Below, piece after piece: positions 4,273 to 64,000 of a stretch of 64,000 nt of DNA. Below the pieces are notes generated by a model. It was not told the origin of the DNA. It ran no database searches and was given only the letters and a program-made list of their open reading frames with translations. The stretch lies in IMG/VR virus record IMGVR_UViG_3300036770_003657, positions 124,001 through 188,000 of that record; one strand, 5' to 3'. Each line of letters begins with the position of its first letter. Positions within the stretch are counted from its first letter, which is position 1. Position numbers and translations under genes: made by a program.

Positions 4273-4518
4273 ATGACGTTGCGCTGGAATATTGATTTTA
4301 AGCCCGCAGACGCAGATTTCTGCTATGTCGACACCTACACAACTCATAATTCTAAAACATTCTACGAGAATATTTTTTACTGTAAGCCAGTAAAATATGA
4401 TGTCGATAGCACCCTATTAAATTATAACAATAATAACAAGCTATTCTACTCAACCTATTGGCCAAATAACGATATAACTCGTCATGCTGTAAGCCAAGGT
4501 GGTAGAATAAGCAGATGA
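4273..4518 (+). CDS. Small hypothetical protein (81 aa)
   Basis: SD AAGGA before the ATG; fills the gap between genes; its TGA overlaps the giant gene ATG (ATGA). Confidence 0.55.
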   Translation: MTLRWNIDFKPADADFCYVDTYTTHNSKTFYENIFYCKPVKYDVDSTLLNYNNNNKLFYSTYWPNNDITRHAVSQGGRISR

Positions 4519-7500
4519 GTGTATTAAAGAGATATTTCCAAGGCGTACAAGGAGTCCAAGACGGTTGGCGCTCCATAATGATTGGCGAAAAGGGTGCCCA
4601 AGGTACTCAAGGCCTACAAGGTGACAGCGCAGTTGGTGGATTTTTCTTATGGGAACAAACTACACCAGCTGTAGTTTGGGAAATTCCTCATAACTTAGGA
4701 GCACGAATTGTAGTCGTGCAGTTGGCCAATACCGATGGTGAAAGTATTCAAGAAGGTTTACCAGGTAGTCCATATATAGAATTTATTGATTCTAGTAATT
4801 TAAAGGTATATTTTAGCACAGCTACAGCAGGATATGCAGCAATTACCAGTGGTGGTGGCTTACAGGGTATCCAAGGTATGCAGGGTATCCAAGGTATACA
4901 GGGTGATTTGGGACCACAAGGTATTCAAGGTCGTCAAGGTACACAAGGTTTACAGGGTATTCAGGGTCTAGGTTTTGTATGGCGTGGCCTTTGGAATATA
5001 AACGAAACTTATAATTTTAATGACGTAGTATACTATAATGGTGGTAGCTGGGTAGCCAAACAACCAAATAGTGGTCAAGCAGCTCCATTCCAAGGTAGCG
5101 CATATTGGGATATAATGACAGCCCAAGGACCACAGGGTATACAAGGTGTACAAGGTAGATTTGGTCCACAAGGACCACAAGGACCACAAGGAACACAGGG
5201 TTTACAAGGTGATTTAGGTATACAAGGTATACAAGGTATACAGGGTATTCAAGGTCGAAGCATTATTTGGAAAGGTTATTGGACTGACACTGATGAATAT
5301 TTTATCGGTGATATGGTATACTATAATGGTGGTAGCTGGGTTTCAACTAGAGATGCTAGTTTATCGGATCCAAACATTAATAAAGAGCCATATGTAGGCA
5401 GTCAATTTTGGGATAAGAGTACTAGCCAAGGTATTCAAGGTGTACAAGGCGTACAAGGTGTACAAGGCGTCCAAGGCGTACAAGGTGTACAAGGCGTCCA
5501 AGGTATACAGGGTGTTGGATTCCAATGGCGTGGTACTTGGAGTGCTACTGAAGAATATGATATTAACCATACAGTATACTATAACGGCTTTAGTTATGTA
5601 AGTTTAATAAGATTCAACACTGGAAATAGACCAGATGACCCAGCTCATGATGATAAATGGGATATTGTAGCAGCACAGGGTGTACAGGGTGTCCAAGGCG
5701 TACAGGGTGTACAAGGTGTCCAAGGTGTCCAAGGTGTACAAGGTGTACAAGGCGTTCAAGGTGTACAAGGCGTTCAAGGTGTACAAGGCGTACAAGGCGT
5801 ACAGGGTGTACAGGGTGTCCAAGGCGTACAGGGTGTACAGGGTGTACAGGGTGTACAGGGTATCCAAGGTTTCAGTATTTTATGGCAAGGACAGTGGCAA
5901 AATAATGTAACCTATAATACAAACCACGTTGTTTATTATGATGGCAACAGCTGGATAGCATTAGAGGATGGAATAGAAGGTATACATCCAGGACCAGAAG
6001 ATGATAACGGTTATTGGGGAAGAATGACCGCTCAAGGTATCCAAGGTCTACAAGGTGTCCAAGGTGTACAAGGTGTACAAGGTGTACAAGGTGTACAGGG
6101 CGTTCAAGGCGTACAAGGTGTACAGGGTGTACAGGGCGTACAAGGTGTACAGGGCGTACAAGGTGTACAGGGCGTACAAGGCGTACAGGGTGTACAGGGT
6201 GTACAGGGCGTTCAGGGCGTTCAGGGTGTACAAGGTGTACAAGGTGTACAGGGCGTACAAGGTGTACAAGGCGTACAAGGTGTACAGGGTGTACAGGGCG
6301 TACAAGGTGTACAAGGTGTACAAGGCGTACAGGGTGTACAGGGTGTACAGGGCGTACAAGGTGTACAGGGTGTACAAGGTGTACAGGGTGTACAAGGTGT
6401 ACAAGGTGTACAGGGCGTACAGGGCGTACAGGGTGTACAGGGTGTCCAAGGTGTACAAGGTGTACAAGGTGTACAAGGTATTCAAGGTATTCAAGGTCTT
6501 GGATTTAACTGGAAAGGTGTTTGGGATCCTAATACTACATATTTTACTAATGATGCAGTATTTTATAATGGTAGTGCTTATAATAGTCAATATGATTATA
6601 ATATAGGTAAACGTCCAGATCTAACATGGGACCCTGAAGCATGGAGTATGATTGCAAGCCAAGGTATTCAAGGCTTGCAGGGTGTACAAGGTGTACAAGG
6701 TGTACAAGGCGTACAGGGTGTACAAGGCGTACAGGGTGTACAGGGTGTACAAGGCGTACAGGGTGTACAAGGTGTCCAAGGTGTACAGGGTGTCCAAGGC
6801 GTTCAAGGTGTACAGGGTGTTCAAGGCAATCAAGGTGTACAAGGCGTACAAGGCGTACAAGGTGTACAAGGCGTTCAAGGTGTACAGGGTGTACAGGGCG
6901 TACAGGGTGTACAAGGTGTACAAGGTGTACAAGGTGTACAGGGTGTACAGGGTGTCCAAGGCGTACAAGGTGTCCAAGGTGTCCAAGGTGTACAAGGTGT
7001 ACAAGGCGTTCAAGGTGTACAAGGCGTTCAAGGTGTACAAGGCGTTCAAGGTGTACAAGGTGTACAGGGTATTCAAGGCTTTGGTATCATTTGGCGTGGT
7101 TTATACGATTTTGATACAAGATATTATCAAAATGAAGTTGTATTCTATAATGGCGCAAGCTGGATTGTAAAATATACTGGTGTAGAAGGGGTAACTCCAG
7201 GTAGTGAAAATCCAACTACTGTACCAGGACCAGAGTATAATGATACATTTTGGGAATTATTAGCTAGTCAAGGTATTCAAGGATTACAAGGTGTACAGGG
7301 TGTACAAGGTGTACAAGGTGTACAGGGTGTACAGGGTGTACAAGGTGTACAGGGTGTACAGGGTGTACAAGGCGTACAAGGTGTCCAAGGTGTACAAGGT
7401 GTCCAAGGTGTCCAAGGTGTACAAGGTGTACAAGGCGTACAGGGTGTACAGGGTGTACAGGGTGTACAGGGCGTACAGGGTGTACAAGGTGTACAGGGTG

Positions 7501-10500
7501 TACAAGGCGTACAAGGTGTACAGGGTGTACAGGGTTTACAGGGCGTTCAAGGCGTTCAAGGTGTACAGGGCGTACAAGGCGTTCAAGGTGTACAAGGTGT
7601 ACAAGGTGTACAGGGTGTCCAAGGCGTACAGGGCGTTCAAGGTGTACAAGGCGTTCAAGGTGTACAAGGTGTACAAGGTGTACAGGGCGTACAAGGCGTA
7701 CAGGGTGTACAAGGTGTACAAGGTGTACAGGGTGTACAAGGTGTCCAAGGTGTACAAGGTGTACAGGGTGTCCAAGGTGTACAGGGTGTCCAAGGTGTCC
7801 AAGGTGTACAAGGTGTACAAGGTGTACAAGGTGTACAGGGTGTACAAGGCGTACAGGGTGTACAAGGCGTACAGGGTGTACAAGGTGTTCAAGGTGTACA
7901 GGGCGTTCAAGGTGTACAAGGTGTCCAAGGTGTCCAAGGCGTTCAAGGTGTCCAAGGTGTCCAAGGCGTACAGGGTGTACAGGGTGTACAAGGCGTACAG
8001 GGTGTACAAGGTGTACAAGGCGTACAAGGTGTACAAGGAGTACAGGGTGTTCAAGGCGTCCAAGGTATCCAAGGTATTCAAGGTCGCGGACCTGTATGGC
8101 GCGGTGATTGGAGTTCTACTGAACAATATCAAACAGATGATATGGTATACTATGATGGTAATACTTTTATTGCTATCACAGGCGACGCTACAACAAGATT
8201 CAGTGGTGTAGAAACTAGACCATTATTAAGCCCAGTAGGAGCAGGTTATCCAGGTGATGTGAACGATACTTACTGGAATAGAATGACCGCTCAGGGTGTC
8301 CAAGGTTTACAGGGCGTACAAGGTGTACAGGGTGTACAGGGTGTACAAGGAGTACAAGGAGTACAAGGTGTACAAGGCGTACAAGGCGTTCAAGGTGTAC
8401 AGGGCGTTCAAGGTGTACAGGGCGTTCAAGGCGTACAGGGTGTACAAGGAGTACAAGGTGTACAAGGCGTACAGGGTGTACAGGGTGTACAAGGCGTTCA
8501 AGGCAATCAAGGTGTGCAAGGTGTACAAGGAGTACAGGGTGTACAGGGTGTACAAGGTGTACAGGGCGTTCAAGGTGTACAAGGTAATCAAGGTGTCCAA
8601 GGTGTACAAGGCGTACAGGGCGTACAAGGTGTACAGGGTGTCCAAGGCGTACAAGGTGTACAAGGTGTGCAAGGCGTACAAGGCGTACAAGGCGTACAAG
8701 GCGTACAAGGTATACAGGGTGTACAAGGCGTACAGGGTGTACAGGGTGTACAAGGCGTACAAGGTGTTCAGGGTGTACAAGGTGTACAGGGCGTACAGGG
8801 CGTACAGGGTGTCCAAGGTGTACAAGGTGTACAGGGCGTTCAAGGTGTACAAGGTGTCCAAGGTGTACAGGGTGTACAGGGTGTACAGGGTGTACAAGGC
8901 GTACAGGGTGTACAGGGTGTCCAAGGTGTCCAAGGTGTACAAGGTGTACAAGGTGTACAGGGTGTACAAGGCGTACAGGGTGTACAAGGCGTACAGGGTG
9001 TACAAGGCGTACAGGGTGTACAAGGCGTTCAAGGCAATCAAGGTGTCCAAGGTGTCCAAGGTGTTCAAGGTGTACAAGGTGTACAGGGCGTTCAAGGCGT
9101 TCAAGGCAATCAAGGTGTACAGGGCGTTCAAGGCGTACAAGGTGTACAAGGCGTACAAGGCGTACAAGGCGTACAAGGTGTACAAGGTGTACAGGGTGTT
9201 CAAGGTGTACAAGGTGTACAGGGCGTTCAAGGTGTACAAGGTGTACAAGGCGTACAGGGTATTCAAGGATTTGGATTACGTTGGAAAGGCGAGTACGATC
9301 CTTCCACAATTTACCAACAAAATGATGTAGTTTATTATGACGGTGATAGCTTTATAGCAGTATATCCAATTGACCATTATAATGCACCGTTTGGACAATT
9401 CAGTGGTCAAGTACCAGAATTTACTCCAGGCGATGTAAACACTACATATTGGAATAGAATAACAGCTCAAGGTATTCAAGGTGTACAGGGTGTTCAAGGT
9501 GTACAGGGTGTTCAAGGTGTACAGGGTGTCCAAGGTGTACAGGGTGTACAAGGTCTACAAGGCATTCAGGGACTACAAGGTGTACAGGGTGTACAGGGTG
9601 TTCAAGGCGTCCAAGGTGTTCAAGGCGTCCAAGGTGTACAAGGCGTCCAAGGTGTTCAAGGCGTCCAAGGTGTACAAGGCGTCCAAGGTGTTCAAGGTGT
9701 ACAGGGTGTACAGGGTGTACAGGGTGTACAGGGTGTACAGGGTGTACAAGGCGTTCAAGGTGTTCAAGGTGTACAGGGTGTACAAGGCGTACAGGGTGTA
9801 CAAGGTGTACAGGGTGTACAAGGCGTACAGGGTGTACAAGGTGTACAGGGTGTACAGGGTGTACAGGGCGTACAAGGTGTACAGGGCGTACAAGGCGTAC
9901 AAGGTGTACAAGGTGTACAAGGTGTACAAGGCGTCCAAGGTGTACAAGGTGTCCAAGGTGTCCAAGGTGTACAGGGTGTACAAGGCGTACAAGGCGTACA
10001 GGGTGTACAAGGCGTACAAGGTGTACAGGGTGTACAGGGTGTACAAGGTGTACAAGGCGTTCAAGGTGTTCAAGGTGTTCAAGGTGTTCAAGGTGTACAA
10101 GGCGTACAAGGTGTACAAGGCGTACAGGGTGTACAAGGCGTACAAGGTGTACAGGGTGTACAAGGCGTACAAGGTGTACAGGGTGTACAGGGTGTACAAG
10201 GTGTTCAAGGCGTCCAAGGTGTACAAGGTGTACAAGGTGTACAAGGTGTACAAGGTGTCCAAGGCGTACAGGGCGTACAAGGTATACAGGGCTTTGGTAT
10301 TATCTGGCGTGGAATGTATGATTTCACAACAAGATATTATCAAAACGAAGTTGTTTTCTACAATGGTGCCAGCTGGATAGTTCGTTATACTGGTGTAGAA
10401 GGATTAACACCTGGTATAGATGACCCAACTACAGTACCAGGACCAGAATATAATGACACATATTGGGAATTACTAGCCAGCCAAGGTATCCAAGGATTAC

Positions 10501-13500
10501 AAGGTGTACAAGGTGTACAGGGTGTACAAGGTGTACAGGGCGTTCAAGGTGTACAGGGCGTACAGGGTGTACAGGGCGTACAGGGTGTCCAAGGTGTACA
10601 GGGTGTACAGGGTGTACAGGGTGTACAAGGTGTACAAGGCGTTCAAGGTGTACAAGGCGTTCAAGGTGTTCAAGGTATACAAGGTGTACAAGGTGTACAA
10701 GGTGTACAGGGTGTACAAGGTGTACAAGGTGTACAAGGCGTTCAAGGTGTCCAAGGTGTCCAAGGCGTTCAAGGTGTCCAAGGTGTACAGGGTGTACAAG
10801 GTGTACAGGGTGTACAAGGTGTCCAAGGTGTCCAAGGTGTACAGGGTGTACAGGGTCAGCAAGGTATTCAAGGTCTTGGATTTAATTGGCGTGGAGACTG
10901 GAAAGTAGATGAAGTATATGCCAAGAACGATGCTGTAAGGTATGATGGAACATCTTGGGTTTCTCTAACAAAAGATAATATAGGTAATAACCCAAGGCTT
11001 ACAGAAGGTGTTGAATGGGACGTAATTGCTGCACAGGGTGTACAGGGTGTTCAAGGTATTCAAGGTGTACAGGGCGTACAGGGCGTACAAGGTGTACAAG
11101 GCGTTCAAGGTGTACAGGGTGTTCAAGGCATTCAAGGATTCAGCTTTGTTTGGAGAGGTGAATACGATCACACAGCTGATTATCAACAGAATGATGTAGT
11201 TTATTATAATGGCAGTAGTTTTGTAGCTATTTGGCCAATTAATTTTTATGATGTCATTGGTAGCCAATTCAGTGGTGAAGTACCAGAAGTTATCGGAGTA
11301 TACGGTGAGCCAGGAACATTAAACAGTACATATTGGGCAAGAATGTCAGCTCAGGGCGTACAAGGTGTACAGGGTGTACAAGGCGTACAGGGTGTACAAG
11401 GTGTACAGGGTGTACAAGGCGTACAGGGTGTACAAGGTGTACAGGGTGTACAAGGTGTACAGGGCGTACAAGGTGTACAGGGCGTACAAGGTGTACAGGG
11501 TGTTCAAGGTGTACAAGGTGTACAAGGCGTTCAAGGCGTACAGGGTGTACAAGGAGTACAAGGTGTACAAGGTGTACAAGGCGTTCAAGGCAATCAAGGT
11601 GTACAGGGCGTTCAAGGCGTACAAGGTGTACAAGGCGTACAAGGCGTACAAGGTGTCCAAGGTGTACAAGGCGTTCAAGGCGTTCAAGGCGTACAAGGTG
11701 TACAAGGTGTACAAGGTGTACAGGGTGTACAAGGTGTACAGGGCGTTCAAGGCGTGCAAGGTGTACAAGGTGTACAGGGTGTTCAAGGTGTACAAGGTGT
11801 ACAAGGTGTACAAGGTGTACAAGGCGTACAGGGTGTACAGGGTATACAGGGTGTCCAAGGTGTCCAAGGCGTACAGGGTATACAAGGTTTTGGTATTATT
11901 TGGCGTGGATATTACGACTTCAATACTACATATTTCCAAAACGAAGTTGTTTTCTATGATGGAAATAGTTGGATAGTAAAATACACTGGAGTAGAAGGTG
12001 TTCCTACAGGTATCAGTAATCCAGCAGCAGTTCCTGGACCAACCGATATTGATACTTGGTGGGAAAGATTAAGTAGCCAAGGTATTCAAGGTTTACAAGG
12101 CGTTCAAGGTGTACAAGGTGTACAAGGCGTTCAAGGTGTACAAGGCGTTCAAGGTGTACAGGGTGTACAGGGTGTACAAGGTGTACAAGGCGTACAGGGT
12201 GTACAGGGCGTTCAAGGCGTTCAAGGTGTACAGGGCGTACAAGGCGTACAGGGTGTACAAGGTGTACAAGGCGTACAAGGCGTACAAGGTGTACAAGGCG
12301 TACAAGGTGTACAAGGCGTTCAAGGTGTACAAGGTGTACAAGGCGTTCAAGGCGTACAAGGCGTTCAAGGCGTACAAGGCGTACAAGGTGTACAGGGTGT
12401 ACAAGGCGTCCAAGGCGTTCAAGGCGTCCAAGGCGTACAAGGTGTACAAGGCGTACAGGGTGTACAAGGCGTACAGGGTGTACAAGGTGTCCAGGGTATC
12501 CAAGGTATACAAGGCGGACAGGGTATACAAGGCGTACAGGGCGTTCAAGGTGTACAAGGTGTACAAGGCGTACAGGGTGTACAAGGCGTACAGGGTGTAC
12601 AAGGCGTACAGGGTGTACAGGGCGTACAGGGTGTACAAGGCGTACAGGGTGTACAAGGCGTACAGGGTGTACAAGGCGTTCAAGGCGTACAGGGCGTTCA
12701 AGGTGTCCAAGGTGTACAGGGTGTACAGGGTGTACAAGGTGTCCAAGGTGTACAGGGTGTACAAGGTGTACAAGGTGTACAGGGTGTACAAGGTGTCCAA
12801 GGTGTACAAGGACAACAAGGTATTCAAGGCGGCGGTGTAACTTGGAAAGGCATTTGGAATTCAACAACTAATTACATTGAAAATGATGCAGTATTTTACA
12901 ATGGTAATTCTTGGATCAGCGTATTAGAACCAAATATAGATAATGTACCTAATTTAATGTCAATTTATTGGGACATGCTTGCTAGCCAAGGTATTCAAGG
13001 CTTGCAAGGCGTACAGGGTGTACAGGGTGTACAGGGCGTTCAAGGTGTACAGGGCGTTCAAGGTGTACAGGGCGTTCAAGGTGTACAGGGCGTTCAAGGC
13101 GTACAGGGTGTACAGGGCGTACAAGGTGTACAGGGTGTACAGGGTGTACAGGGTGTACAGGGTGTACAGGGTGTACAGGGTGTACAGGGCGTACAGGGCG
13201 TACAGGGCGTACAGGGCGTACAAGGTGTACAGGGTGTACAGGGTGTACAAGGTGTACAAGGCGTACAAGGCGTACAGGGCGTTCAAGGTGTACAGGGCGT
13301 ACAGGGCGTTCAAGGTGTACAAGGTGTACAGGGTATTCAAGGTGTACAGGGTATTCAAGGTGTAGGATTAATATGGAAAGGTCAGTGGAGTGATTCAGTA
13401 TCTTACATAGCCAACGACATTGTATTTTACGATGGCAGTGCTTATATTTCAGTTCAGTCAACTAACCTAAATAATAATCCAACAATTGAAGATAGATCAA

Positions 13501-25374: not shown

Positions 25375-25402
25375 TTGACAATGTAAAAAAAATCTATATA
25401 AT
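25375..25402 (+). promoter_or_regulatory. Sigma70-type promoter
   Basis: Perfect TTGACA (25375-25380), 16-nt spacer, perfect TATAAT (25397-25402), upstream of the glycosyltransferase operon. Confidence 0.7.
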
Positions 25403-49814: not shown

Positions 49815-49815
49815 T

Positions 49816-52872: not shown

Positions 52873-53093
52873 TAGATTTAGATAAATTAGAACTGCGTGA
52901 TTTACAAAAGGAATCAGCTAGGGCATTGAGTGTTATGGAAGCTACCAATAATAATATATATAAATACAATATACAAGCTTATCATAACAGTCAAAATTGG
53001 TATAAAGCTGTAATAAAGGATTATATAAACCAATATGGAGATTTACCAAGTAAAACTGGACCTGCTAATTCAATAATACTTATTTTAGACTAA
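52869..53093 (+). CDS. Small hypothetical protein (74 aa)
   Basis: ATGA and TAATG coupling to both neighbours. Confidence 0.65.
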   Translation: MIDLDKLELRDLQKESARALSVMEATNNNIYKYNIQAYHNSQNWYKAVIKDYINQYGDLPSKTGPANSIILILD

Positions 53094-54268: not shown

Positions 54269-55251
54269 AACCTATAGCTATAAATTATGTTGATACTAGA
54301 AGGTATGATACAGTATATATAGATTGGACGTTGGGTAATTTTTGCAATTTTAAATGTAGTTATTGTCCAGATAATTTGCATAATAATTCAAATCCTATGG
54401 TAGAAATTGAAAAGGTAAAAAAATTTGTTAAACTAATGTTTGGTCATTATGCAAAACATCTGAATAAAAAATATTTTGTGTTTAATTTAATGGGCGGTGA
54501 ACCAACACTTTGGAAAAGTATAGAACCATTTATCATATGGGTTAAAGAGTATAGTAAAGATTTAGGAATAGTTTCATATATTGAAGTATTAACAAACGCT
54601 AGTAGAACTTTACGTTGGTGGAATGACTATGTAAAATATTTTGACTTTATAAAAATTACTCATCATACTGAATTCGCTAACCCTATTCATACGAGAACAG
54701 TTGCTGATCTTGCTATAGATAATGGAATAAACGCTACAGTGCAAGTTACTATGATACCTGCATTATGGAATAATTGTATAGAACATTTAGATCAAATTAA
54801 ACAAAGTAAACATGAATTCCAAATTGATGTAAAACCTTTACGTTTAGATTTCGGACCTCATCTATACGATTACACATCAGACCAACTTGCTTTCTTTAAA
54901 AAACTATATAGAAAAAATAACATTAAAAGTAGATTGTCAGGATCAATTGGAATGGGAAGTAAATTTTTATTTCCTGATAATACAGAAAAGCAAATTAGGT
55001 ATCAAGACTTGATTTCTAATAAAGAAAACTCTTGGGTAGACTGGAAATGTTGGGCAGGTTTAGATATACTTACTATAAGATCAGATGGATCTCTTAGAAT
55101 GGGAGGTGCTTGTCTAATGAAAGATAATGGGTTTTTTGATAAAAAAATTACAGATGATGATATTGTATTTAGAATTGACCCTATAATTTGTAAACAACAA
55201 TGGTGTAGTTGCTCACCTGATATGGAAACAAGGAAAGAAAATGTTAGATAA
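54265..55251 (+). CDS. Radical SAM protein with C-terminal Cys cluster
   Basis: CNFKCSYC, MGGEPT; WKCWAG..IRSDG..GGAC..ICKQQWCSC. Confidence 0.9.
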   Translation: MKPIAINYVDTRRYDTVYIDWTLGNFCNFKCSYCPDNLHNNSNPMVEIEKVKKFVKLMFGHYAKHLNKKYFVFNLMGGEPTLWKSIEPFIIWVKEYSKDLGIVSYIEVLTNASRTLRWWNDYVKYFDFIKITHHTEFANPIHTRTVADLAIDNGINATVQVTMIPALWNNCIEHLDQIKQSKHEFQIDVKPLRLDFGPHLYDYTSDQLAFFKKLYRKNNIKSRLSGSIGMGSKFLFPDNTEKQIRYQDLISNKENSWVDWKCWAGLDILTIRSDGSLRMGGACLMKDNGFFDKKITDDDIVFRIDPIICKQQWCSCSPDMETRKENVR

Positions 55252-56413
55252 TACAGTAATCTGTATGGTTCCATTTAGAGAATTACACATTAACAATAAT
55301 GGAAAATATAGAAATTGTTGTATACAACAAAATACAATGGGTAAAATTAATTTAAAAGTTAAGGATCCTAATTTGTGGTTTCAAATGCAACAAGACATGG
55401 TTGAGCTAAGAGCTGATTTAGAGCAAAATAAACGTCACTTAAATTGTATTAAATGCTGGAAATTAGAGGATGAAGGGCTATCATCTTATAGAATGAATTG
55501 GAATAATCAATACATATCTAATGGAGATACAGATCTTATACCTAGAATAGAAGTAATTGATTTAAGATTGGGTAATAGATGTAATCTTAAATGCAAAATG
55601 TGTAACTCAACTTGGAGTAATTTGATTTCTTCAGAAGTAGAAGAATTAAAAAAAATAGGAATTGATAATACTTATACTCAAATGCCAGTAATTGGTATAG
55701 TTAAACAATCTGATGATTTTATGGATGGATTATTTAACTTTATAAAACGCACTCCTACCATTAAAGAAATTAAGTTGGCAGGCGGTGAACCTTTTGTCAT
55801 GTCAGAAGTAGAGGAATTTATTCATAGGTTAGTTAAAGAAAATTTGACCAATTTTGAAATTAGTTTACTTACTAATGTGACTATTGTAAAAGATAGAATA
55901 ATAGAGGATTTAGAAAAATTTAAGAGCACTCATATACAATGTAGCATTGATGGTATTGGAAAATATTTAGAATATCAGCGAAGTCCTTCTAAATGGGAAG
56001 TAATTAGTAGAAATTTTGAAAGATTATATAATTCAAAGTTAACAGTAAATTTAACACCTTGCTGGAGTAATTTAAATATACTATCTGTAGCAGATTTTTT
56101 AGAATGGACTGCTAATTTCCCCAAAAGTCATGTTGCATACAACGAAGTAAATAAACCATCATACCTTGATTGGAGATTAGTTCCTATAAAAGAAAGAAAT
56201 GAAGTTATTGATAAATTAAAAAAATTAAAATTACATACTAAAGTACATAGGGATTATACCAAATTAATCAATAAGTTTCAGTATGAAGTAAGAGATTATC
56301 TACAAGAAGAAATAATACAGTATTCTGATGCAATTATAGCATGGAATAGATTCGGTAAAGTACAATATCAAGAGTTATATCCTTGGAACTCAAGAATATT
56401 AAATAGCATATGA
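55241..56413 (+). CDS. Radical SAM protein with N-terminal twitch-like domain
   Basis: CMVPF..NGKYRNCC..CIKC precedes DLRLGNRCNLKCKMC; AGGEPF. Confidence 0.9.
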   Translation: MLDNTVICMVPFRELHINNNGKYRNCCIQQNTMGKINLKVKDPNLWFQMQQDMVELRADLEQNKRHLNCIKCWKLEDEGLSSYRMNWNNQYISNGDTDLIPRIEVIDLRLGNRCNLKCKMCNSTWSNLISSEVEELKKIGIDNTYTQMPVIGIVKQSDDFMDGLFNFIKRTPTIKEIKLAGGEPFVMSEVEEFIHRLVKENLTNFEISLLTNVTIVKDRIIEDLEKFKSTHIQCSIDGIGKYLEYQRSPSKWEVISRNFERLYNSKLTVNLTPCWSNLNILSVADFLEWTANFPKSHVAYNEVNKPSYLDWRLVPIKERNEVIDKLKKLKLHTKVHRDYTKLINKFQYEVRDYLQEEIIQYSDAIIAWNRFGKVQYQELYPWNSRILNSI

Positions 56414-57813
56414 ATAATTCATACCCTTCAAAGACTTGGTGTATACTTCCCTGGGTGCATTTAAGTACAAGACCAGATGGTAGTATGCGTGTTTGTTGTA
56501 CAGCCAATGCAAGTGGTGTAGGACCTAGTAATGATTTTAAAATAGGTGGTCCACAAGTTGGTGTTTTAAAAGATGATCAAGGGTTACCTAGTAATTTAAA
56601 CATATTAGACTTTAAAAGTGCTTGGAATAGTACTTATATGAAAAATGTACGAAAGCAAATGCTAGCGGGTGAAAAGCCTGCTAGTTGTTTAAAATGTTAT
56701 AAAGAAGAAGATGCTGGTCATAATAGCAAAAGAATGTGGGAAACTGAATACTGGAAGCAAAGAGTTAGTATAGATAAATTAATAGAAAATACTGAAGACG
56801 ATGGATCTGTTCCACCTGAGTTAACTTATATAGATTTAAGATTTGGAACTAAATGTCAATTAGCTTGTATTATGTGCAGTCCACATGATAGTTCAGGATG
56901 GATTAAGGATTGGCAAACTGTTTATCCTACATTAGAAAATCAAGGTGTAAAAAAGATTTGGCAATGGGATAATAAAGGTAGTATTAATGGCAGTAGTTAT
57001 AACTGGCATAAAAATAATCCTGTATTTTGGAAACAGTTTTACGAACAAATACCGCACATGCAGCAGGTGTATTTTGCAGGGGGTGAACCTTTAATTATTG
57101 ATGAGCATTACGAAATACTTGAAGAAATTATAAGACAGGGCAAAGCCAAAGATATAGAAATTCGTTATAATAGTAACGGTGTAGAATGGAGGGATGATTT
57201 ATTTGACTTATGGAAACATTTTAAAATAGTGAGATATCATTATAGTGTAGATAGCATAAATTCAATGAATGAATATATCCGCTACCCAAGTAAATGGGAA
57301 AGGACATCTGAAGTATTTAAGATTTTAGATGAACAAACATCTGATAATGTTGAGGTTACTGTAGCCTGTGCAGTGCAAGCGTTAAATATATATTATATCC
57401 CTGATTTTTTACGTTGGAAATTAGAACAAAATTTTAAGAAAGTTAATATGTGGCCGTTAGGTGCTGGAGGAATAAACTATCACTTTGTGTACTGGCCTGC
57501 TTTTTTAAACGTAAAGGTTTTACCTAACTGGTTCAAAGACGAATGTGAAAGAAAATACAAAGAGTTTATACCTTGGTTTGAAAATAACTGGGAGTTATGT
57601 TTAGCTGAAAAAGATAGAGGTAAAGTTTCCAAAGATAAGTGGTTAACTAATTCCTATGGTATTAAACGACTTAGAGGAATGATAAGTTTTATGAAATCTG
57701 AAGATTGGAGTCAACGTTTACCAGAAATGAAAGACTATTTAGAAAAAATTGACAGACACAGAGATACTAGTTTTTATCAAATTTTTCCAGAAATGGCTAA
57801 AATTTTTACTTAG
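56410..57813 (+). CDS. Radical SAM protein with N-terminal twitch-like domain
   Basis: CILPW..DGSMRVCC..CLKC precedes DLRFGTKCQLACIMC; AGGEPL. Confidence 0.9.
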   Translation: MNNSYPSKTWCILPWVHLSTRPDGSMRVCCTANASGVGPSNDFKIGGPQVGVLKDDQGLPSNLNILDFKSAWNSTYMKNVRKQMLAGEKPASCLKCYKEEDAGHNSKRMWETEYWKQRVSIDKLIENTEDDGSVPPELTYIDLRFGTKCQLACIMCSPHDSSGWIKDWQTVYPTLENQGVKKIWQWDNKGSINGSSYNWHKNNPVFWKQFYEQIPHMQQVYFAGGEPLIIDEHYEILEEIIRQGKAKDIEIRYNSNGVEWRDDLFDLWKHFKIVRYHYSVDSINSMNEYIRYPSKWERTSEVFKILDEQTSDNVEVTVACAVQALNIYYIPDFLRWKLEQNFKKVNMWPLGAGGINYHFVYWPAFLNVKVLPNWFKDECERKYKEFIPWFENNWELCLAEKDRGKVSKDKWLTNSYGIKRLRGMISFMKSEDWSQRLPEMKDYLEKIDRHRDTSFYQIFPEMAKIFT

Positions 57814-57821
57814 GATAGTTT

Positions 57822-58829
57822 ATGTACGAATCTTTACACGGAGATCCAATAGTTTTTGCTAAAGTAGAAAAGGATTTAAGATTTCTTCATTCTAGATGGC
57901 AAAAAAGTGATACTTATGCTGAACCTCATGAAGGTTATATGATGCATTTAAGAAATCCTGATGTAGTAGACAATATAGCAAAAAACCTTGAACCTGCTAA
58001 GATGTTCACAGATGAACAAAGTTCTTTTAATCGAGATGAGTTATCTTGGCTTTATGGATTTGCTTTTAGTCAATGTTTGAATGTAAGGCATAATGCAAAT
58101 GGAACAATATTTTTGTCCGGTAATTTACATAAAATTGCCGAAAAGTTTATAGATAAGTTATCTAAAATTTTGCCAGGTTGTGAAAATAGTCCTAGTGTAG
58201 CAGGAAATTTTTTAATTACGCCTAGTCAATATGGTCTTCATACAGATAGTACTAGAGAGACAGATTGGATGGATAGTTTAAATAAAATTTCTGTAAATGA
58301 TTCAAGAAGAAGATATGTGCCATGGAGAAATATTCTAATACCAATATGGATAGGGGGAAACCCAGACACTGTAAGTCATGCTGTATTTTTTGATCAGCGT
58401 CATATAGATTTTGCTCATGTTTATCTTCATGGAAGACCTTACGCTAAGGATCCAGCAACTACATACCCTATTGTTTACAATCATTCTGATGTAGTTTTTC
58501 ATAATGAATTAGGAGAAATTATACCTAATGAGAGAAATCTTTTATCTTATGATAAAGAACATCATAAAAAATATTTGTATTATACACCATATAGCAGATT
58601 AACTGGGTTAACACCATCTTTAACTACAGAATGGATACCAGGTAAACCATTTGTTTTTGATGCATTTCAATTACATGCTACTAATAAAGGTACAGAAGTT
58701 GAATATGGGTATAAACATGTAAGTATAAACAAAGAAGGAAAGGAACTCTCATCAAGAATAGAATTTAAGCATAAAACATGGGACGTTAAAATGGGACTTC
58801 TATTAACTTTTTTACGTGAGGTAGTATGA
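57822..58829 (+). CDS. Putative 2OG-Fe(II) oxygenase-like protein
   Basis: HxD (GLHTDS) and distal His (FVFDAFQLHAT) in a DSBH-like spacing. Confidence 0.5.
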   Translation: MYESLHGDPIVFAKVEKDLRFLHSRWQKSDTYAEPHEGYMMHLRNPDVVDNIAKNLEPAKMFTDEQSSFNRDELSWLYGFAFSQCLNVRHNANGTIFLSGNLHKIAEKFIDKLSKILPGCENSPSVAGNFLITPSQYGLHTDSTRETDWMDSLNKISVNDSRRRYVPWRNILIPIWIGGNPDTVSHAVFFDQRHIDFAHVYLHGRPYAKDPATTYPIVYNHSDVVFHNELGEIIPNERNLLSYDKEHHKKYLYYTPYSRLTGLTPSLTTEWIPGKPFVFDAFQLHATNKGTEVEYGYKHVSINKEGKELSSRIEFKHKTWDVKMGLLLTFLREVV

Positions 58830-60028
58830 AATCTAAAACATTTTGTGTTATGCCTTGGAATAGTATTGCTACTAATGCTTCTGGAATTTATAGAGTTTGT
58901 TGCAATAGTACTCCTGGGAAAAACGTAATTAATGATGATAATGGACAACCAACAAAAATTTTTAAAAATAGTCCTAGCCAAATTTGGAACTCTTATACAT
59001 ATAAAAAAATAAGGGCAGAAATGTTATCTAATGTTCGTCCTGAAATGTGTGAAAGATGTTTTAAGGAAGAAGATTCTGGAATCGAATCTGCTAGAATGAA
59101 TTGGAATAAACGTTGGTATAACGAGTCAAAAAATTACGATGTGATAGAAAAAAATATGGACATTCAGTATATAGATTTAAGATTAGGAAATCTATGTAAC
59201 CTAAAATGTAGAATGTGCAATCCTTACAGTAGTAGCCAATGGGTAGATGAATGGAATCAGGTAGTCGATACTGCTGAACTTGTTCCTAATTTTAAAATTT
59301 CGGATGATGAGAGTGTACGTTTATCTAGCCTAGATTGGCCTACTCGTTCTAAAACTTGGGAAAATATTATAGAAATTGCAGATACTATAGAAGAGATATA
59401 TCTAACTGGTGGAGAACCAACTCTTGCTATAGAGCAATATAAACTATTTGAAATTTTGAAACAAAAAAAATTAACAAAGAAAATTAAGTTAAAATATAAT
59501 ACAAATTTAACAAATATCCCTAAAAAAATGATAGATTATTGGAGATATTTTAAGAAGATTCAAATTAATGCTAGTATAGATGCGTTTGCTGATTTAAATC
59601 GTTATATTAGGTTTCCTACTTCATGGGATATGGTAGACAAAAATATAGAAAAATTTGTAAATATGAAAAATGTTGAAGTACAGTTGCACTGTACTGTTCA
59701 AATGTATAATATATTAAAGCTTCATGAATTATTTGAATGGATGAAAAAGTTTCAATCTATAAAACTGTATTTAAATATTTTAAATCATCCAAGATCTATG
59801 AATATTAGAGTCCTACCAAAAGAACTTAAAATTATAGCAGAAGAAAATTTGCAAGATTATTTAGATCTTCCTAAGGTGGAGCAAGTGATAAAATATATGA
59901 ATGATAAGGATGAGAGTGAATTTTTAAATGAATTTTTTAATTACACAATAAAGTTAGACCAATTACGTAAACAAAATCTATTTAACTTGGTACCAGAACT
60001 AGAAAAATATTATGTTCGGAGCGAGTAA
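58826..60028 (+). CDS. Radical SAM protein with N-terminal twitch-like domain
   Basis: CVMPW..SGIYRVCC..CERC precedes DLRLGNLCNLKCRMC; TGGEPT. Confidence 0.9.
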   Translation: MKSKTFCVMPWNSIATNASGIYRVCCNSTPGKNVINDDNGQPTKIFKNSPSQIWNSYTYKKIRAEMLSNVRPEMCERCFKEEDSGIESARMNWNKRWYNESKNYDVIEKNMDIQYIDLRLGNLCNLKCRMCNPYSSSQWVDEWNQVVDTAELVPNFKISDDESVRLSSLDWPTRSKTWENIIEIADTIEEIYLTGGEPTLAIEQYKLFEILKQKKLTKKIKLKYNTNLTNIPKKMIDYWRYFKKIQINASIDAFADLNRYIRFPTSWDMVDKNIEKFVNMKNVEVQLHCTVQMYNILKLHELFEWMKKFQSIKLYLNILNHPRSMNIRVLPKELKIIAEENLQDYLDLPKVEQVIKYMNDKDESEFLNEFFNYTIKLDQLRKQNLFNLVPELEKYYVRSE

Positions 60029-61254
60029 TGAAACATTTGGTTTGTAGTAAAATGTGGACAGATGTTAATATCAATATTCCCACTAAGGAAATTAAAAATT
60101 GTTGTAAACGTCAATCGGCTAAAATTTCCTTAGAAGATTTAAAAACATATGGTAAAAATATCTTCACTAAACACGAGTTATTAGAAAACGATAAAAGATT
60201 TATGATACAGGAAAACAAGTTACCAGACGCTTGTTATGGTTGTAAAATTACATGGCCAAATTCTCTTTGGTCAGTTTGGAACTTATGGAAGGAAAAAGAA
60301 TGGTCTAAAGATGAATTGTATAGACTAATTGATGAAGATAAGGTATACCAAATAGAAATAATGTTAGGTATTACTTGTAATCAAGCCTGTATGTATTGTA
60401 CAGAATATGTAAGTAGTAAATGGGCAGACATAAAAAGAATTGATATAAAGCCTGATGACGAATGGGAAAACCTCGCTTTAACGAATTTATACAATTATAT
60501 AGAGAATGATAGATATAATGATAGCAACTCTATATTATATAATTTTTTAGGAGGAGAGCCTTTTTTAGAACCTAAGATTTTTGAAGTCATTGAAAATTTA
60601 ATTAAAATTCATAAAGATAAAAATGTTCAATATAAAAGAATTAATATAAACATGACTACAAATCTTAATATCAAACCTAAAACTATTGATAGATATTTAG
60701 AAATGGTTTCAGGCAATCGAGAAATTTCTTGGAGTTTAAGTGCTAGTATAGATTCTTTAGGTAAACAAGGTGAGGAAATTAGAGACGGTTTAATTTTTTC
60801 TAGATTTGAGCATAATTTAGAAAAGATTTATGAATCAAATATGTTTACAACTATAAGTTTGTTACCATCTGTAAGTGCTTTAAGTATACCAAATAAGATT
60901 GATTTAATTAAATGGTTTTTTAATTTGTCTTTTAGATATAAAAAACCTAACGAATTTGGACATTCATTTAATATTGCTTCTAATATTGTTACATGGCCTG
61001 ATGCCATGCACCCAGGTATACTCACTGATGAATATAAGTCTGAAATTGACAAATGTATTAATTACATTGATAATTTAGATTCAACTAGTAATACTCAAAA
61101 ATATAAAAACCATCTTATTAATTTACGTAATATAATTGGTACTAAAAGGCAGACAAGTTATTTGGAAAGTTCAAGAAAATGGTATCAAGATCAAGGTAGA
61201 TTAAAAGGAAAAGATTATTTTGAAATTTTTCCGTTTTTAAATGTAATTTTATGA
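60028..61254 (+). CDS. Radical SAM protein with N-terminal twitch-like domain
   Basis: CSKMW..IKNCC..CYGC precedes MLGITCNQACMYC; LGGEPF. Confidence 0.88.
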   Translation: MKHLVCSKMWTDVNINIPTKEIKNCCKRQSAKISLEDLKTYGKNIFTKHELLENDKRFMIQENKLPDACYGCKITWPNSLWSVWNLWKEKEWSKDELYRLIDEDKVYQIEIMLGITCNQACMYCTEYVSSKWADIKRIDIKPDDEWENLALTNLYNYIENDRYNDSNSILYNFLGGEPFLEPKIFEVIENLIKIHKDKNVQYKRININMTTNLNIKPKTIDRYLEMVSGNREISWSLSASIDSLGKQGEEIRDGLIFSRFEHNLEKIYESNMFTTISLLPSVSALSIPNKIDLIKWFFNLSFRYKKPNEFGHSFNIASNIVTWPDAMHPGILTDEYKSEIDKCINYIDNLDSTSNTQKYKNHLINLRNIIGTKRQTSYLESSRKWYQDQGRLKGKDYFEIFPFLNVIL

Positions 61255-62645
61255 GCAATATCTCTATTAATTTTGTTACAGTAAAACAAAATAGATTAGA
61301 CAAGATACTTTTTGTATTTTGGAATGATTATTTTTATAATTCAAAAAAGTATTCTAATGATTTTAATTATGCCAATGACTTCATGCTTATGACACAAATG
61401 CTATCTAATAGCATGTTATATCATAATTATGATAGAATATTATGTTATAATTTAGAAGAAGCTTTAGAATTAGGACGAGCAGCAGGATTTAAACATGCTG
61501 TAATTCAGACTCCAGGGAGTGTTATTAATAAAAATTTTGATAAAATAATTTTAGATTATGTTAAAAGTAAGGACTATTTTTTAATTGGTCATATTTTAGA
61601 TGGTAAGCCTAAGAACAAATACTTATATATACACGAACAACTGTTTGTTATAAATTTAGAAAAAATATTAAATTTTGATTATATTATTGACAAGGAATGT
61701 AAGACAGAAAGAACATTTAATAATTATATTAGAAGTGAGTATAATTTTCATGATGATTATACACCTTTATGGATTAAGAAAACAAATGGCAGTATTACAA
61801 CAAAAAATTATAATTGGTCTGCTTCATATTTGAGTTATGGACTTGAAGTAGATGGGCTTTTCACATTTAGTCATAATATAAGATCCAGTAAACTGCATAT
61901 GTATCCTGAAAATAAAAACCATAAAGAAACATGGTATAGTGAGATCAATGAAAATAATCAATTAAAAAATATTATAGATAATGCATATAAAGTTGATAGA
62001 ACTAATCATATTTTTAATAATGAGAATTTTTCTAAAATATCAGCAAAAGCAGTTAGTTCTAAAATAGATACGTTAGTCTTGCCTGCTAGTGGATTTTATT
62101 CAGTTCATGCTTTTTCTCATTTTAGGCCTACTAAAATAATTTATTATGATATAGACAATGTTACTCTTAAGGCTAGAAAGTTAATTAATGAAACTTGGAA
62201 TGGTGTTGATAATATTGACTTCGGCGATCTTTCTGTAAATATTTTTCAAGATAAAAATGTCAACAATATACAACTTGTTGATAATGAATGGATTAAAACT
62301 AGAGAAGAAGCTTTAGAAATATGGAAAGATTTTCAAAAAGTTGACAAAGTGTACCATAATATTGATATTATAGAAGATTATGATAAACTTTTAGGAATTT
62401 TGCCTGATAATAATATGTTTATTTGGTTAAATAGTATATATACTTATAGTACAAATATTTGGAACCATAGACCTAGTAAGATATTTAAATCTTATTTTTC
62501 TCTTGTATATAGACTTATTGATTTCAAAAGTCAAATTTGGATAGATGTAAAAGAGCCTATGGGACAATATCGTTGTTTTGAAGTACATAAATATAGTCCA
62601 GATGCTGTAGCTATGTCTTATGCTAATTATAAAAAATTTATATGA
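61251..62645 (+). CDS. Hypothetical 464-aa protein, possible Rossmann/methyltransferase-like C-terminal half
   Basis: ATGA-coupled ORF; LVLPASG..IIYYDID segment. Confidence 0.5.
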   Translation: MSNISINFVTVKQNRLDKILFVFWNDYFYNSKKYSNDFNYANDFMLMTQMLSNSMLYHNYDRILCYNLEEALELGRAAGFKHAVIQTPGSVINKNFDKIILDYVKSKDYFLIGHILDGKPKNKYLYIHEQLFVINLEKILNFDYIIDKECKTERTFNNYIRSEYNFHDDYTPLWIKKTNGSITTKNYNWSASYLSYGLEVDGLFTFSHNIRSSKLHMYPENKNHKETWYSEINENNQLKNIIDNAYKVDRTNHIFNNENFSKISAKAVSSKIDTLVLPASGFYSVHAFSHFRPTKIIYYDIDNVTLKARKLINETWNGVDNIDFGDLSVNIFQDKNVNNIQLVDNEWIKTREEALEIWKDFQKVDKVYHNIDIIEDYDKLLGILPDNNMFIWLNSIYTYSTNIWNHRPSKIFKSYFSLVYRLIDFKSQIWIDVKEPMGQYRCFEVHKYSPDAVAMSYANYKKFI

Positions 62646-63184
62646 TTATTGCTGGTAATAAAAACTATGGGCTCGCTAAAGAATTATATAAATATTATCC
62701 TGATGCCTTTTTTGCTAGTAGAACTACAGGATTTGATTTAACTAATTCTACTGATCAAAAAAAGTTAGCAGATTTAGTTTTGGAAAACAAAGTTTTTATT
62801 AATTGTAGTGCTTTATGGAAGTTTAATCAAACTGTTTTATTAGACATAGTTTATAAAAAATGTTTAGAAAATAGTCATAGACCTTACATAATAAATGTTG
62901 GATCAACAACAGATCGTGTAAAAAAAGGGGGGTCTTGGTTATATAATGCTGAAAAGAAAGCATTGAGAGATTATAGTAATACTTTAGGTATAAATGGAGT
63001 ATGGGATAAGGGACCGAAAGTGACCTTAATAAGTTTTGGGTCATTATCAAATGTACAGCAAAAGCATCCTAGTAGAAAATGTATTCCTATTGATATTGCT
63101 GCTTCCTATATAAAATGGATTTTAGAACAGCCTGAAAGTTTATGCATAAATGAAATAAGTATTGACCCGGTACAGTTTATATGA
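62642..63184 (+). CDS. Short-chain dehydrogenase/reductase-like protein
   Basis: IIAGNKNYGLA, FINCSA, IINVGST, catalytic YxxxK (YNAEK), VTLISFG. Confidence 0.75.
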   Translation: MIIAGNKNYGLAKELYKYYPDAFFASRTTGFDLTNSTDQKKLADLVLENKVFINCSALWKFNQTVLLDIVYKKCLENSHRPYIINVGSTTDRVKKGGSWLYNAEKKALRDYSNTLGINGVWDKGPKVTLISFGSLSNVQQKHPSRKCIPIDIAASYIKWILEQPESLCINEISIDPVQFI

Positions 63185-64000
63185 AAATTAAAATAGGAAT
63201 ATTATTTAATGAACTAAATGTTGATAAGGAAATACTTTTTGTAAGGAATTATCTAGAAAATACATTAAGAGCATTCAATACAGATTCTTTTTTTTGGCAA
63301 AAAATTTCTGATATAGAAGAATCAGTAGACTATTTATTAGTTGTTAAAAATGATTTTGTCATTATAAATGCTGATTTATTTGTTCAAAATTTGATAAATT
63401 TATGTGATAATTCTACTTATGAAACAGAAGAGTTTGTATTTACTAAAAAAAATAATTCTGTAGAAACGAGCAAAAAGTTAGAATTATATTATTCCAGTAC
63501 TTATCTTGCATATGATAGATTCAAAAGAGAGTATGACGGTCACGGTAGTAAATTTTTTTTAAAATATTGGGCGTATAATTCTGAAGTTATACCTTATCAA
63601 ATTCCACCACGAACAGATTGCTTGCTAGTTATAGGTGCAGGATTATTGCCTTTGGCTGCTATATCGCATTTAGAAAATCCTGCTACAATAATTATAATTG
63701 ATCATAATAAAAATTGCATTGATTTTCAAAAATTTTTAATAAACAATTTTGATTACATTAAGAATAGTAATTCTTACCACAATTTAGTTGATAACTATAC
63801 AATAGAAAATAGACAAGATTATTGTAATATCAAAAATAATAATAATTTAGAAGTTATTTTAAAAAATTTAGATAAAATACGGAAAAGATTAAATGATAGT
63901 AATATTTTATATTTTTATAATGATATTACTGAACCAAATTTAGAAATATTAGATATTATAAGAAAATCTAATAACCCATATGTATATTTTAGTAATGTAT
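63181..64000 (+). CDS. Partial ORF running off the window, SAM-methyltransferase-like
   Basis: Translated by hand from the ATG at 63181 (ATGA overlap), no stop up to 64000; LLVIGAGLL..IIIIDHN motif I/II-like. Absent from the supplied ORF track. Confidence 0.6.
   Translation, partial: MKIKIGILFNELNVDKEILFVRNYLENTLRAFNTDSFFWQKISDIEESVDYLLVVKNDFVIINADLFVQNLINLCDNSTYETEEFVFTKKNNSVETSKKLELYYSSTYLAYDRFKREYDGHGSKFFLKYWAYNSEVIPYQIPPRTDCLLVIGAGLLPLAAISHLENPATIIIIDHNKNCIDFQKFLINNFDYIKNSNSYHNLVDNYTIENRQDYCNIKNNNNLEVILKNLDKIRKRLNDSNILYFYNDITEPNLEILDIIRKSNNPYVYFSNV

Follow-up and report, generated by a model that had tools for sequence, protein, structure and literature searches.

Collagen-like tail fibres in phages and viruses that glycosylate their own surface proteins are both known already, and the case described here is a variant of both. 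Mycobacteriophage virions are glycosylated by phage-encoded glycosyltransferases. Among the giant viruses, Mimivirus has collagen-modifying enzymes and fibril glycans, with glycosylation of its collagen proceeding via hydroxylysine, and the chloroviruses have A064R, a multi-domain protein that combines glycosyltransferase and methyltransferase. Protein glycosyltransferases that contain tetratricopeptide repeats (TPR) are also familiar, namely the flagellin glycosyltransferase FlmG and O-GlcNAc transferase. The locus considered here lies in IMGVR_UViG_3300036770_003657, the 399,796-bp record of a T4-like jumbo phage of ~400 kb, from which a stretch of 64,000 nucleotides (positions 124,001 to 188,000 of the record, called the window below) was analysed. 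It contains a gene for a giant collagen-like fibre, a short operon of glycosyltransferase and methyltransferase genes beside it, and a large island rich in radical S-adenosylmethionine (radical SAM, or rSAM) enzymes. The first-pass annotation of this DNA joined all three into one phage-encoded kit for chemical tailoring of the fibre. Our results support that idea in part. The anatomy is real and the kit hypothesis is half right: the adjacent operon recurs with collagen-like fibres in other phages, the rSAM island does not hold up as part of the same system, and nothing points to chemistry on Gln side chains.

The operon, found as claimed beside the fibre gene (25425-28200, plus strand), encodes three proteins. 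The first (25425..26168, 247 aa) is a DUF4422/GT111-like glycosyltransferase, placed in its family by a PF14393 match (E = 2e-24, 87 bits) that covers profile positions 31-218 of 220. When the operon proteins were searched against PDB sequences, the sole match was a weak one of this protein to WbbM (E = 0.009); the DUF4422 domain of Klebsiella WbbM is a GT111 UDP-galactofuranosyl (UDP-Galf) transferase (PMC12269835). The second protein (26161..27414, 417 aa) reads as a fusion of a TPR-like domain at residues 1-195, with weak Pfam TPR matches, to an FkbM-like methyltransferase half. It is 42% identical over its full length to a protein of Synechococcus phage S-SCSM2R, where the homologue adjoins a baseplate gene, and GenBank labels its homologue in Synechococcus phage DSL-LC02 as FkbM. 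The third (27421..28200, 259 aa) is a GT2-like glycosyltransferase that matches PHROG 29879, galactosyl transferase, at E = 2e-25 and Pfam GT2 at E = 9.5e-5, slightly short of the cutoff. On the opposite strand a NUDIX hydrolase gene (28197..28631; Pfam NUDIX E = 2e-16), possibly serving nucleotide-sugar turnover, abuts the operon, as it invariably does in the relatives (minus-strand open reading frames [ORFs] of 144-149 aa; loci L163-L191 and L204-L206). The order fibre, 946-aa protein, DUF4422, TPR-methyltransferase, glycosyltransferase, NUDIX, gp15 is conserved in ~20 related contigs, and the operon proteins are 71-93% identical across these relatives, compared with 37-67% for two aligned segments of the neighbouring 946-aa protein. 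In the clade of the window, then, the operon belongs to the stable backbone and is no variable cargo. None of its proteins has a predicted transmembrane segment (no 19-residue stretch with hydrophobicity above 1.6).

The TPR-like half of the 417-aa protein was singled out for a wider search because it is the only piece of the operon with homologues in unrelated small phage contigs. These contigs, which were found through a DNA pattern encoding (GVQ)6, carry TPR-like homologues at 33-38% identity within a cassette of GH130-like, TPR, Methyltransf_24 and GT25 genes, with an ATP-grasp gene in some, and the cassette directly adjoins collagen-like tail-fibre genes with the usual tail-fibre N-terminus. 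An alignment of the TPR-like domain alone, used without reference to collagen, matched at least 586 viral stretches, and neighbourhoods were read 10 kb either side of each match. A collagen-like run of 8 or more Gly-X-Y triplets, the Y position being taken mostly by Gln, was present in 43 of the best 80 TPR loci (1124 kb) versus none of the 80 rSAM-island loci used for comparison (1445 kb). Outside the window's own clade the count is 29 of 59, and in one locus the triplets number up to 641, with Gln in 600. The collagen ORF is at most two genes from the TPR module in 36 of 42 loci, where random placement within the locus would give 23.6. Many of the collagen-free TPR loci end within one gene of the module. 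The reciprocal check agrees, with a TPR gene on at least 25 of the 82 stretches recovered by the (GVQ)6 DNA pattern. The association of the glycosyltransferase and methyltransferase operon with collagen-like and tail-fibre genes is non-random across several phage lineages; the co-occurrence across genomes that the first-pass annotation had named as its own check is thus seen for the operon.

The usual module comprises a GH130-like protein, a TPR-methyltransferase fusion and a transferase resembling the 259-aa operon protein, whose family numbers 57 ORFs across the TPR loci. The fusion partners of the TPR-like domain in 13 long homologues are FkbM in 9 (best E = 8e-24), Methyltransf_24 in 6, GT17 in 3, GT25 in 3, GT2 in 2, GT7C in 2, Radical_SAM with SPASM in 2, WavE in 1 and RMNT_CmcI (rhamnosyl O-methyltransferase) in 1. 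The TPR-like domain is a phage-specific module, found with interchangeable glycosyltransferase, sugar methyltransferase and, in a few cases, radical SAM/SPASM domains. One chain, a multi-transferase "megasynthase" of 1301 aa (L231:7382-11284, plus strand), combines GT2, GT7C, GT25, GT17, TPR-like and FkbM domains and adjoins a collagen-like ORF. In the cultured phage DSL-LC02 the order is a collagen-like protein, a "beta-mannosyltransferase", a 717-aa TPR-FkbM-rSAM/SPASM protein, a second FkbM protein and a 1787-aa tail fibre. The GenBank entry for the 717-aa protein (WJZ48257; L260:12001-14154) names an FkbM methyltransferase only; it also contains the TPR-like domain, Radical_SAM (E = 1e-8) and SPASM (7e-6). 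We conclude from these sequences that the operon encodes a putative glycan-building and glycan-methylating module, built on a docking domain peculiar to phages and linked to fibre genes by its genomic position. Neither the glycosylation of phage fibres, nor Gly-Val-Gln collagen, nor the TPR module turned up as the subject of a paper in our literature searches.

The fibre itself is extreme. Its gene (4515..22517, plus strand) is a single reading frame of 6000 aa with no internal stop, and 33 Gly-X-Y runs, the longest of 109 triplets, add up to 1209 triplets, or ~60% of the protein. Gln occupies the Y position in 1142 of these, which bears out the earlier count of more than a thousand Gly-X-Gln units. 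The X position is Val in 818 and Ile in 215; GVQ (813) and GIQ (212) make up 85% of all triplets, followed by GGQ (29) and GLQ (21), and Gly-Pro-Gln occurs only 8 times. Lys stands at Y in 2 of the 1209, and the whole fibre has 37 Lys and 5 Cys. Pfam Collagen (PF01391) matches six segments with E from 4e-13 to 1e-44, so that membership in the family is clear. The repeats are interrupted by ~27 diverged nodes resembling CBM5/12 carbohydrate-binding modules (19 short and several long); PF02839 scores 39.6, 44.8 and 34.6 bits on three segments, above its cutoff of 26.2, and the nodes are predicted to bind carbohydrate. The 19 short nodes, of 51-70 aa, separate the Gly-X-Y runs and share a motif that has Trp and Gly close to its start, goes on through Tyr, Asn-Asp, Val, Asn-Gly, Ser-Trp and Pro, and ends with a late Trp followed by a last Gln. 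Compared in pairs they have a median identity of 39%, which argues that the array is old and under selection and is neither a recent expansion nor an artefact of assembly. Nor is the fibre as a whole such an artefact, since the nodes are diverged and the gene order is repeated in related contigs, where partial collagen ORFs exceed 2000 aa (up to 2267 aa). A Gly_rich_2 domain lies at residues ~2952-3289. At residues 3654-5023 the nodes acquire an extra insert of ~90 aa, giving five modules of 121-161 aa with 18-29% Ser+Thr. The Ser/Thr-rich distal domains of the first-pass annotation thus survive in moderate form, but not as a distal tip, for the extreme C-terminus is collagen repeat again.

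Taken together, these features describe a collagen-type "beads-on-a-string" protein, predicted to be trimeric. The standard rise of collagen is 0.286 nm per residue, at which the triple helix, if extended, would be ~1 micrometre long, and a trimer would display ~80 CBM-like modules. A search for long relatives (3300-10500 aa) among 5.8 billion protein clusters returned 10 proteins, none of them named and none equally Gln-uniform; the one that comes closest, of 3351 aa, has Gln in 335 of its 492 triplets. Runs encoding (GVQ)6 also occur on two giant-virus contigs from metagenome-assembled genomes (MAGs) in IMG/VR (L083, L096). Fourteen bp after the fibre gene begins that of the 946-aa structural protein (22532..25372, plus strand), which has weak PHROG matches to virion structural proteins and is syntenic in ~20 relatives. 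It shares the ~90-aa Ser/Thr-rich insert domain with the fibre: in BLASTP its residues 276-378 align with four fibre modules at 43-51% identity.

The best explanation of this arrangement, in which we place about as much belief as doubt, is that the fibre-adjacent operon glycosylates the fibre, with the latter, we infer, as acceptor. The fibre would act as a multivalent adhesin within a tail or neck fibre module, and the soluble operon enzymes would assemble a short, methyl-capped glycan on the fibre proteins in the cytoplasm. The likeliest sites would be the Ser/Thr-rich insert domains of the fibre and the 946-aa protein and not the Gly-X-Gln helix, and the TPR-like domain may dock the enzymes on their substrate or on one another. 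We found no B12-binding rSAM methylase and no transglutaminase, and nothing links the enzymes to Gln residues.

Several observations weigh against fibre glycosylation. The case for modification of a virion protein is one of gene neighbourhood. Aquatic phages commonly have collagen-like tail fibres, and the counts given above stand without a matched base rate from fibre regions that lack the module; when TPR domains are clustered at 60% identity by single linkage, collagen is found in the locus for only 10 of 17 clusters and next to the module for 6 of 17, a link that recurs without being obligate. The C-terminal half of the 417-aa protein matches Methyltransf_21/FkbM (PF05050) at E = 0.013 and 16.1 bits, below the cutoff of 22.7. 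In the 52-bp gap that precedes the operon there is a perfect sigma-70-type promoter (TTGACA - 16 nt - TATAAT, 25375..25402, plus strand), the sole 12/12 match in the 16 kb from 22 to 38 kb, which suggests early transcription of the operon by host polymerase. The tube gene (36552) has a T4-type late motif TATAAATA upstream, as does gp32 (44643); with 5 matches against 13 expected, the motif is informative for those two genes and not for fibre, operon or island. Finally, the glycosyltransferases of pelagimyophage host-recognition clusters have been read as modifiers of the host O-chain (PMC7029224).

These last points lead to the chief alternative for the operon, that it alters the host surface (the O-chain of lipopolysaccharide, or capsule) in the early phase of infection, for instance to keep out rival phages, and that it adjoins the fibre gene because both belong to a hypervariable host-recognition region. 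Besides the early-type promoter and the pelagimyophage precedent, the enzyme families themselves have an O-antigen flavour: DUF4422/GT111, GT25, WavE, FkbM and RMNT_CmcI are typical of O-antigen assembly. The promoter and this flavour keep the alternative alive, yet the stability of the operon in the window's clade does not suit a hypervariable region, and the module tightly adjoins collagen-like fibres in unrelated small phages as well. Nor was any membrane-spanning enzyme, flippase or initiating transferase found: the search for Gtr-type O-antigen modification gave no GtrA flippase and no GtrB or GtrC-type Pfam match, and the operon proteins lack a membrane stretch. A TPR-like docking domain, too, would fit a protein substrate or an enzyme complex. 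We regard host-surface modification as doubtful, and glycosylation of the fibre by the operon is retained as the preferred reading.

The rSAM island presents a different picture. It is one chain of overlapping genes at ~47.8-67.6 kb, starting at 47829 and running ~3.6 kb past the window end, and it overlaps with the uvsX and uvsY genes and not with fibre genes. Its G+C content is 25-31%, against 36-41% for the backbone. Seven radical SAM genes, six of them within the window, belong to it, four with an N-terminal twitch. The core order of two GT-A genes, a methyltransferase-like gene, a gene for a 74-aa protein, rSAM and N-terminal-twitch rSAM genes recurs in 80 viral loci, each with ~5-6 rSAM genes of which the extra ones vary; we found no description of this core in the literature. 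No island contig among the 80 has a collagen-like run within 10 kb and no island locus has the TPR module, so the co-occurrence seen for the operon fails for the island. The (GVQ)6 runs and the island occur together on the window's own contig only, a result of little weight since most contigs are fragments. A UvsX search matched more than 600 viral stretches, and in the best 80 (76-95% identity) the conserved gene order extends no further than UvsY or the cupin gene that follows it. Just one of these with several kb downstream has the island after uvsY (L261, which shares its contig with L011); distant N-terminal-twitch rSAM genes occur there in a few others, and otherwise the site is empty or differently filled. 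A close relative found separately (L005) carries the island at the same site. The near-absence of the island at this position in the relatives therefore indicates that it behaves as mobile cargo in a hotspot of plasticity. In a very large group of T4-like phages this position, preceded by uvsX, a 79-aa gene, uvsY and in some the cupin, forms a hypervariable hotspot.

The island is, in short, a separate, laterally mobile, low-G+C cassette, independent of the fibre operon, and its link to the fibre is weak and circumstantial. The link consists of four observations. An orthologue (~50% identity) of the island rSAM labelled T2 lies directly 3' of two tail-fibre genes in seven loci (L050, L054-L058, L061). 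Radical_SAM with SPASM is fused to a TPR-FkbM protein in DSL-LC02, beside the collagen-like gene, and in L202, L203, L221 and L224. A homologue of the cupin adjoins the TPR module in L204 and L205. And rSAM cassettes have been reported inside host-recognition clusters of pelagimyophages (PMC7029224). On these grounds one could propose a dedicated fibre-maturation system of tailed phages in which the TPR-like domain recruits interchangeable glycosyltransferases, sugar methyltransferases and, in some lineages, rSAM enzymes to Gln-collagen, with the rSAM islands as an expanded arm; we think this unlikely, and equally unlikely its corollary that the island would perform radical chemistry on virion proteins or their glycans. 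The full form of the first-pass hypothesis, in which operon and island both mature the fibre and rSAM enzymes methylate, epimerise or cross-link the Gly-X-Gln helix, is quite unlikely. It has the same four circumstantial supports, and must contend with the distribution just given, including the lack of the island behind uvsY in almost every backbone relative whose sequence extends 5 kb or more downstream, with the low G+C content, and with the chaining of the island to uvsX and uvsY. Moreover, the fused rSAM of the DSL-LC02 type has no detectable relation to the island rSAMs, no B12-binding domain was found, and a fibre with 5 Cys and 37 Lys offers few such residues.

What the island does instead must be approached through its genes, all on the plus strand. 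The first four (47829..50349; 126, 265, 272 and 177 aa), in an order kept in 14-24 island loci, have no match in Pfam, NCBIfam or PHROG. Two paralogous proteins of 309 and 231 aa follow (50342..51959), with a DxD-type motif (DGD) and a predicted GT-A fold: an AF2 model with a pLDDT of 89.7 retrieves GT-A transferases and sugar nucleotidyltransferases in Foldseek (probability 0.9-1.0, TM-score 0.2-0.39). This family is found in viruses only. A 323-aa protein (51901..52872) has structural neighbours in Methyltransf_11/25/31 (TM-score 0.54-0.66) and a weak PDB profile match to MJ0882; that it is a class I SAM methyltransferase is a lead from the model, not proof. After the gene for the 74-aa protein (52869..53093), present in 37 loci, come two radical SAM genes for 391 and 328 aa (53093..55251; Pfam Radical_SAM E = 7e-10 and 5e-6), for which NCBIfam gives sub-threshold matches only, to maturases, MoaA and viperin. 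The four N-terminal-twitch rSAM genes (55241..61254; 390, 467, 400 and 408 aa), with a 335-aa gene in their midst (57822-58829), match NCBIfam NF033640 at 244, 425, 381 and 152 bits, three above the cutoff of 170 and the fourth below. Across 21 sequences the CxxxCxxC motif (C149, C153, C156) and the N-terminal C11, C29, C30, C93 and C96 are invariant. To our knowledge, no member of NF033640 has a known reaction. The AF2 model of T2 finds generic Foldseek neighbours (SkfB, MoaA, SuiB, anSME, viperin and DesII; TM-score at most 0.44), and for that reason no reaction is assigned to it. The window ends with a 464-aa gene, a 180-aa gene and the first 272 codons of a 515-aa ORF (61251..64000) that starts at 63184 and whose Asp/Asn beta-hydroxylase domain falls beyond base 64000. 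Past the end lie a Methyltransf_24 protein, a 235-aa protein without a Pfam match and the seventh rSAM, and then thyX on the other strand. No transmembrane segment is predicted in the island proteins that lie wholly inside the window; the ORF cut at 64000 is the only island ORF to exceed the hydrophobicity threshold of 1.6 (19-residue Kyte-Doolittle value 1.79). Besides UvsY at the island edge, PHROGs gave no match to island proteins, and profile searches of PDB sequences with three island families gave nothing meaningful. The first-pass account of a second island is upheld as to rSAM, two GT-A-fold and methyltransferase-like genes. Its oxygenases are the weakest part, for the window holds just a cupin and the hydroxylase domain lies outside it. 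That cupin, of the phosphomannose isomerase type (47509..47865, plus strand, 118 aa; Pfam MannoseP_isomer E = 8e-19), belongs to the backbone and not to the island; it stands 3' of uvsY in 29 of the 80 backbone relatives.

A possible, if somewhat doubtful, account is that the island is a self-contained accessory cassette whose enzymes produce or change a small molecule (such as an unusual nucleotide-sugar, a nucleotide or a DNA base modification), with the GT-A proteins, methyltransferases and hydroxylase acting on the product. The fixed core with variable extra rSAMs is consistent with this, as are the position between uvsX/uvsY and thyX, the presence of MoaA, viperin and DesII beside peptide maturases among the nearest structures, and the occurrence of up to 12 rSAM genes in T4-like marine genomes (PMC5332604). 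So is the distribution of the family. The broad rSAM alignment proved too diverse for a genome scan; a narrower one matched only MAG contigs of many unrelated phyla, at 52-78% identity (L242-L250, assigned to Neisseriaceae, Crocinitomicaceae, Rickettsiales, Acidimicrobiaceae, Chloroflexota, Verrucomicrobiales and others), which are most likely phage contigs binned into bacterial MAGs. In cultured phages the island rSAMs have relatives of 23-27% identity only, and the N-terminal-twitch cassette appears to be virus-restricted. Yet the island contains no recognisable enzyme of a nucleotide-sugar pathway, no DpdA, QueC/D or hydroxymethylase is in view, and the structural matches are generic at the low TM-scores given above. 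A pathway for a ribosomally synthesized peptide with post-translational modifications (RiPP), with the 74-aa ORF as precursor, is very unlikely. A small ORF immediately 5' of the first rSAM gene would suit it, as would SkfB, SuiB and anSME among the nearest structures and the many sub-threshold NCBIfam matches to peptide maturases. However, Pfam and NCBIfam detect no RiPP recognition element/PqqD, protease or exporter family among the island proteins. The 74-aa ORF itself does not look like a precursor and is rejected on its conservation pattern, for in 11 aligned homologues the protein is evenly conserved over its whole length, with 17 invariant positions, no Cys and no variable core.

The remaining genes of the window are those of a T4-like myovirus, with gp15, sheath, tube, TerL, gp32, UvsX and UvsY. 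The region at 33-47 kb has no nucleotide match among GenBank phages, and the terminase shares 54% identity with the enzyme of Pseudomonas jumbo phage PA5oct and ~50% with the enzymes of Sinorhizobium phage Phosso and Agrobacterium phage Atu_ph07. No tRNA gene or Rfam family was found across the window. Upstream of the fibre module the window start cuts a large virion structural gene, of which the 3' end remains (2..613, plus strand; PHROG 697 structural protein E = 7e-25; 79-87% identity in relatives). It is followed by two genes for 701 and 466 aa (758..4263, plus strand; phrog_8578 E = 3e-95 and phrog_9417 E = 4e-31) that invariably stand 5' of the fibre gene in relatives and are syntenic at 43-81% identity in loci L092, L099-L102, L109 and L137. 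The full order in related IMG/VR contigs is these three upstream genes, the Gly-Val-Gln collagen gene, the 946-aa gene, the operon, NUDIX, gp15, gp14 and sheath. The gp15-type sheath stabiliser lies at 28628-30256 on the minus strand and the tail sheath gene at 33182-36547; the latter is unusually long (1121 aa), with an internal insertion that contains the flagellin-hook IN motif (PF07196, E = 9e-7). TTGACT-type sites similar to the sigma-70 promoter of the operon precede the gene for deoxynucleoside monophosphate kinase (32375-32403) and the gene at 37294. In the structural and packaging block, between tube and terminase, a 145-aa gene (38735-39172) encodes a TnsA-like endonuclease domain (PF08722, E = 3e-19). 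It is kept in 13 backbone relatives at 55-67% identity and is therefore not a sporadic homing-endonuclease insertion. The large terminase gene (40820-42403) is followed further on by gp32, UvsX and UvsY. Directly 3' of it, a 733-aa gene (42415-44616) without a Pfam match and with a weak PHROG "virion structural protein" match may, judging from its position, encode a divergent portal protein.

If the operon does glycosylate the fibre, the abundant aquatic T4-like phages and cyanophages would join mycobacteriophages and giant viruses as viruses with glycosylated virions, and the usual host-surface reading of glycosyltransferases in host-recognition regions would need revision. Were the wider maturation system real, it would be a bacterial-virus counterpart of the machinery for post-translational modification of collagen. 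In either case the TPR-like domain provides a simple genomic marker for such modules, and the question of fibre modification is directly testable because two cultured Synechococcus phages, DSL-LC02 and S-SCSM2R, carry the module. The N-terminal-twitch rSAM cassette is a widespread enzyme set in its own right. The fibre, as an extreme collagen design found in nature (~85% Gly-Val/Ile-Gln, with very little Pro in its repeats and with regularly spaced, predicted sugar-binding nodes), is of interest to work on biomaterials and on the rules by which collagen folds.

Set against the described systems, the fibre resembles known phage collagen-like tail fibres (PF01391; WJZ48255 of DSL-LC02) in its uninterrupted Gly-X-Y runs without hydroxyproline, its place in a tail-fibre module and the frequency of Gln at Y; it differs in being larger and more uniform, and in its regular interruption by CBM5/12-like nodes. 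The giant viruses offer a likeness of plan, that is, virus enzymes for the virus's own surface proteins (proposed here) and fusions of glycosyltransferase with sugar methyltransferase, comparable to the 1301-aa protein of L231. No sequence relationship was found between the window enzymes and those of giant-virus glycosylation, and the hydroxylysine route of Mimivirus and animal collagen does not fit a fibre so poor in Lys at Y, with no lysyl hydroxylase seen. The island shares with the NF033640 family its three members above cutoff and an arrangement in multi-copy clusters as reported in surveys of T4-like phages (PMC5332604, PMC7029224). The mycobacteriophage system is alike in having soluble phage glycosyltransferase genes beside structural genes, and in the proposed cytoplasmic O-glycosylation of Ser/Thr-rich parts. 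Unlike it, the window operon, known here from genes alone, has other glycosyltransferase families, a methyltransferase and a TPR-like docking domain, stands behind an early-type promoter, and would act on a fibre and not on capsid or tail tube. With FlmG and O-GlcNAc transferase, finally, the operon shares by analogy a helical-repeat domain that could bring a protein substrate to a glycan-modifying domain; in the phages, however, this domain is mostly fused to methyltransferases, with the glycosyltransferases mostly encoded by separate genes, and the fibre is what it would be expected to bind.

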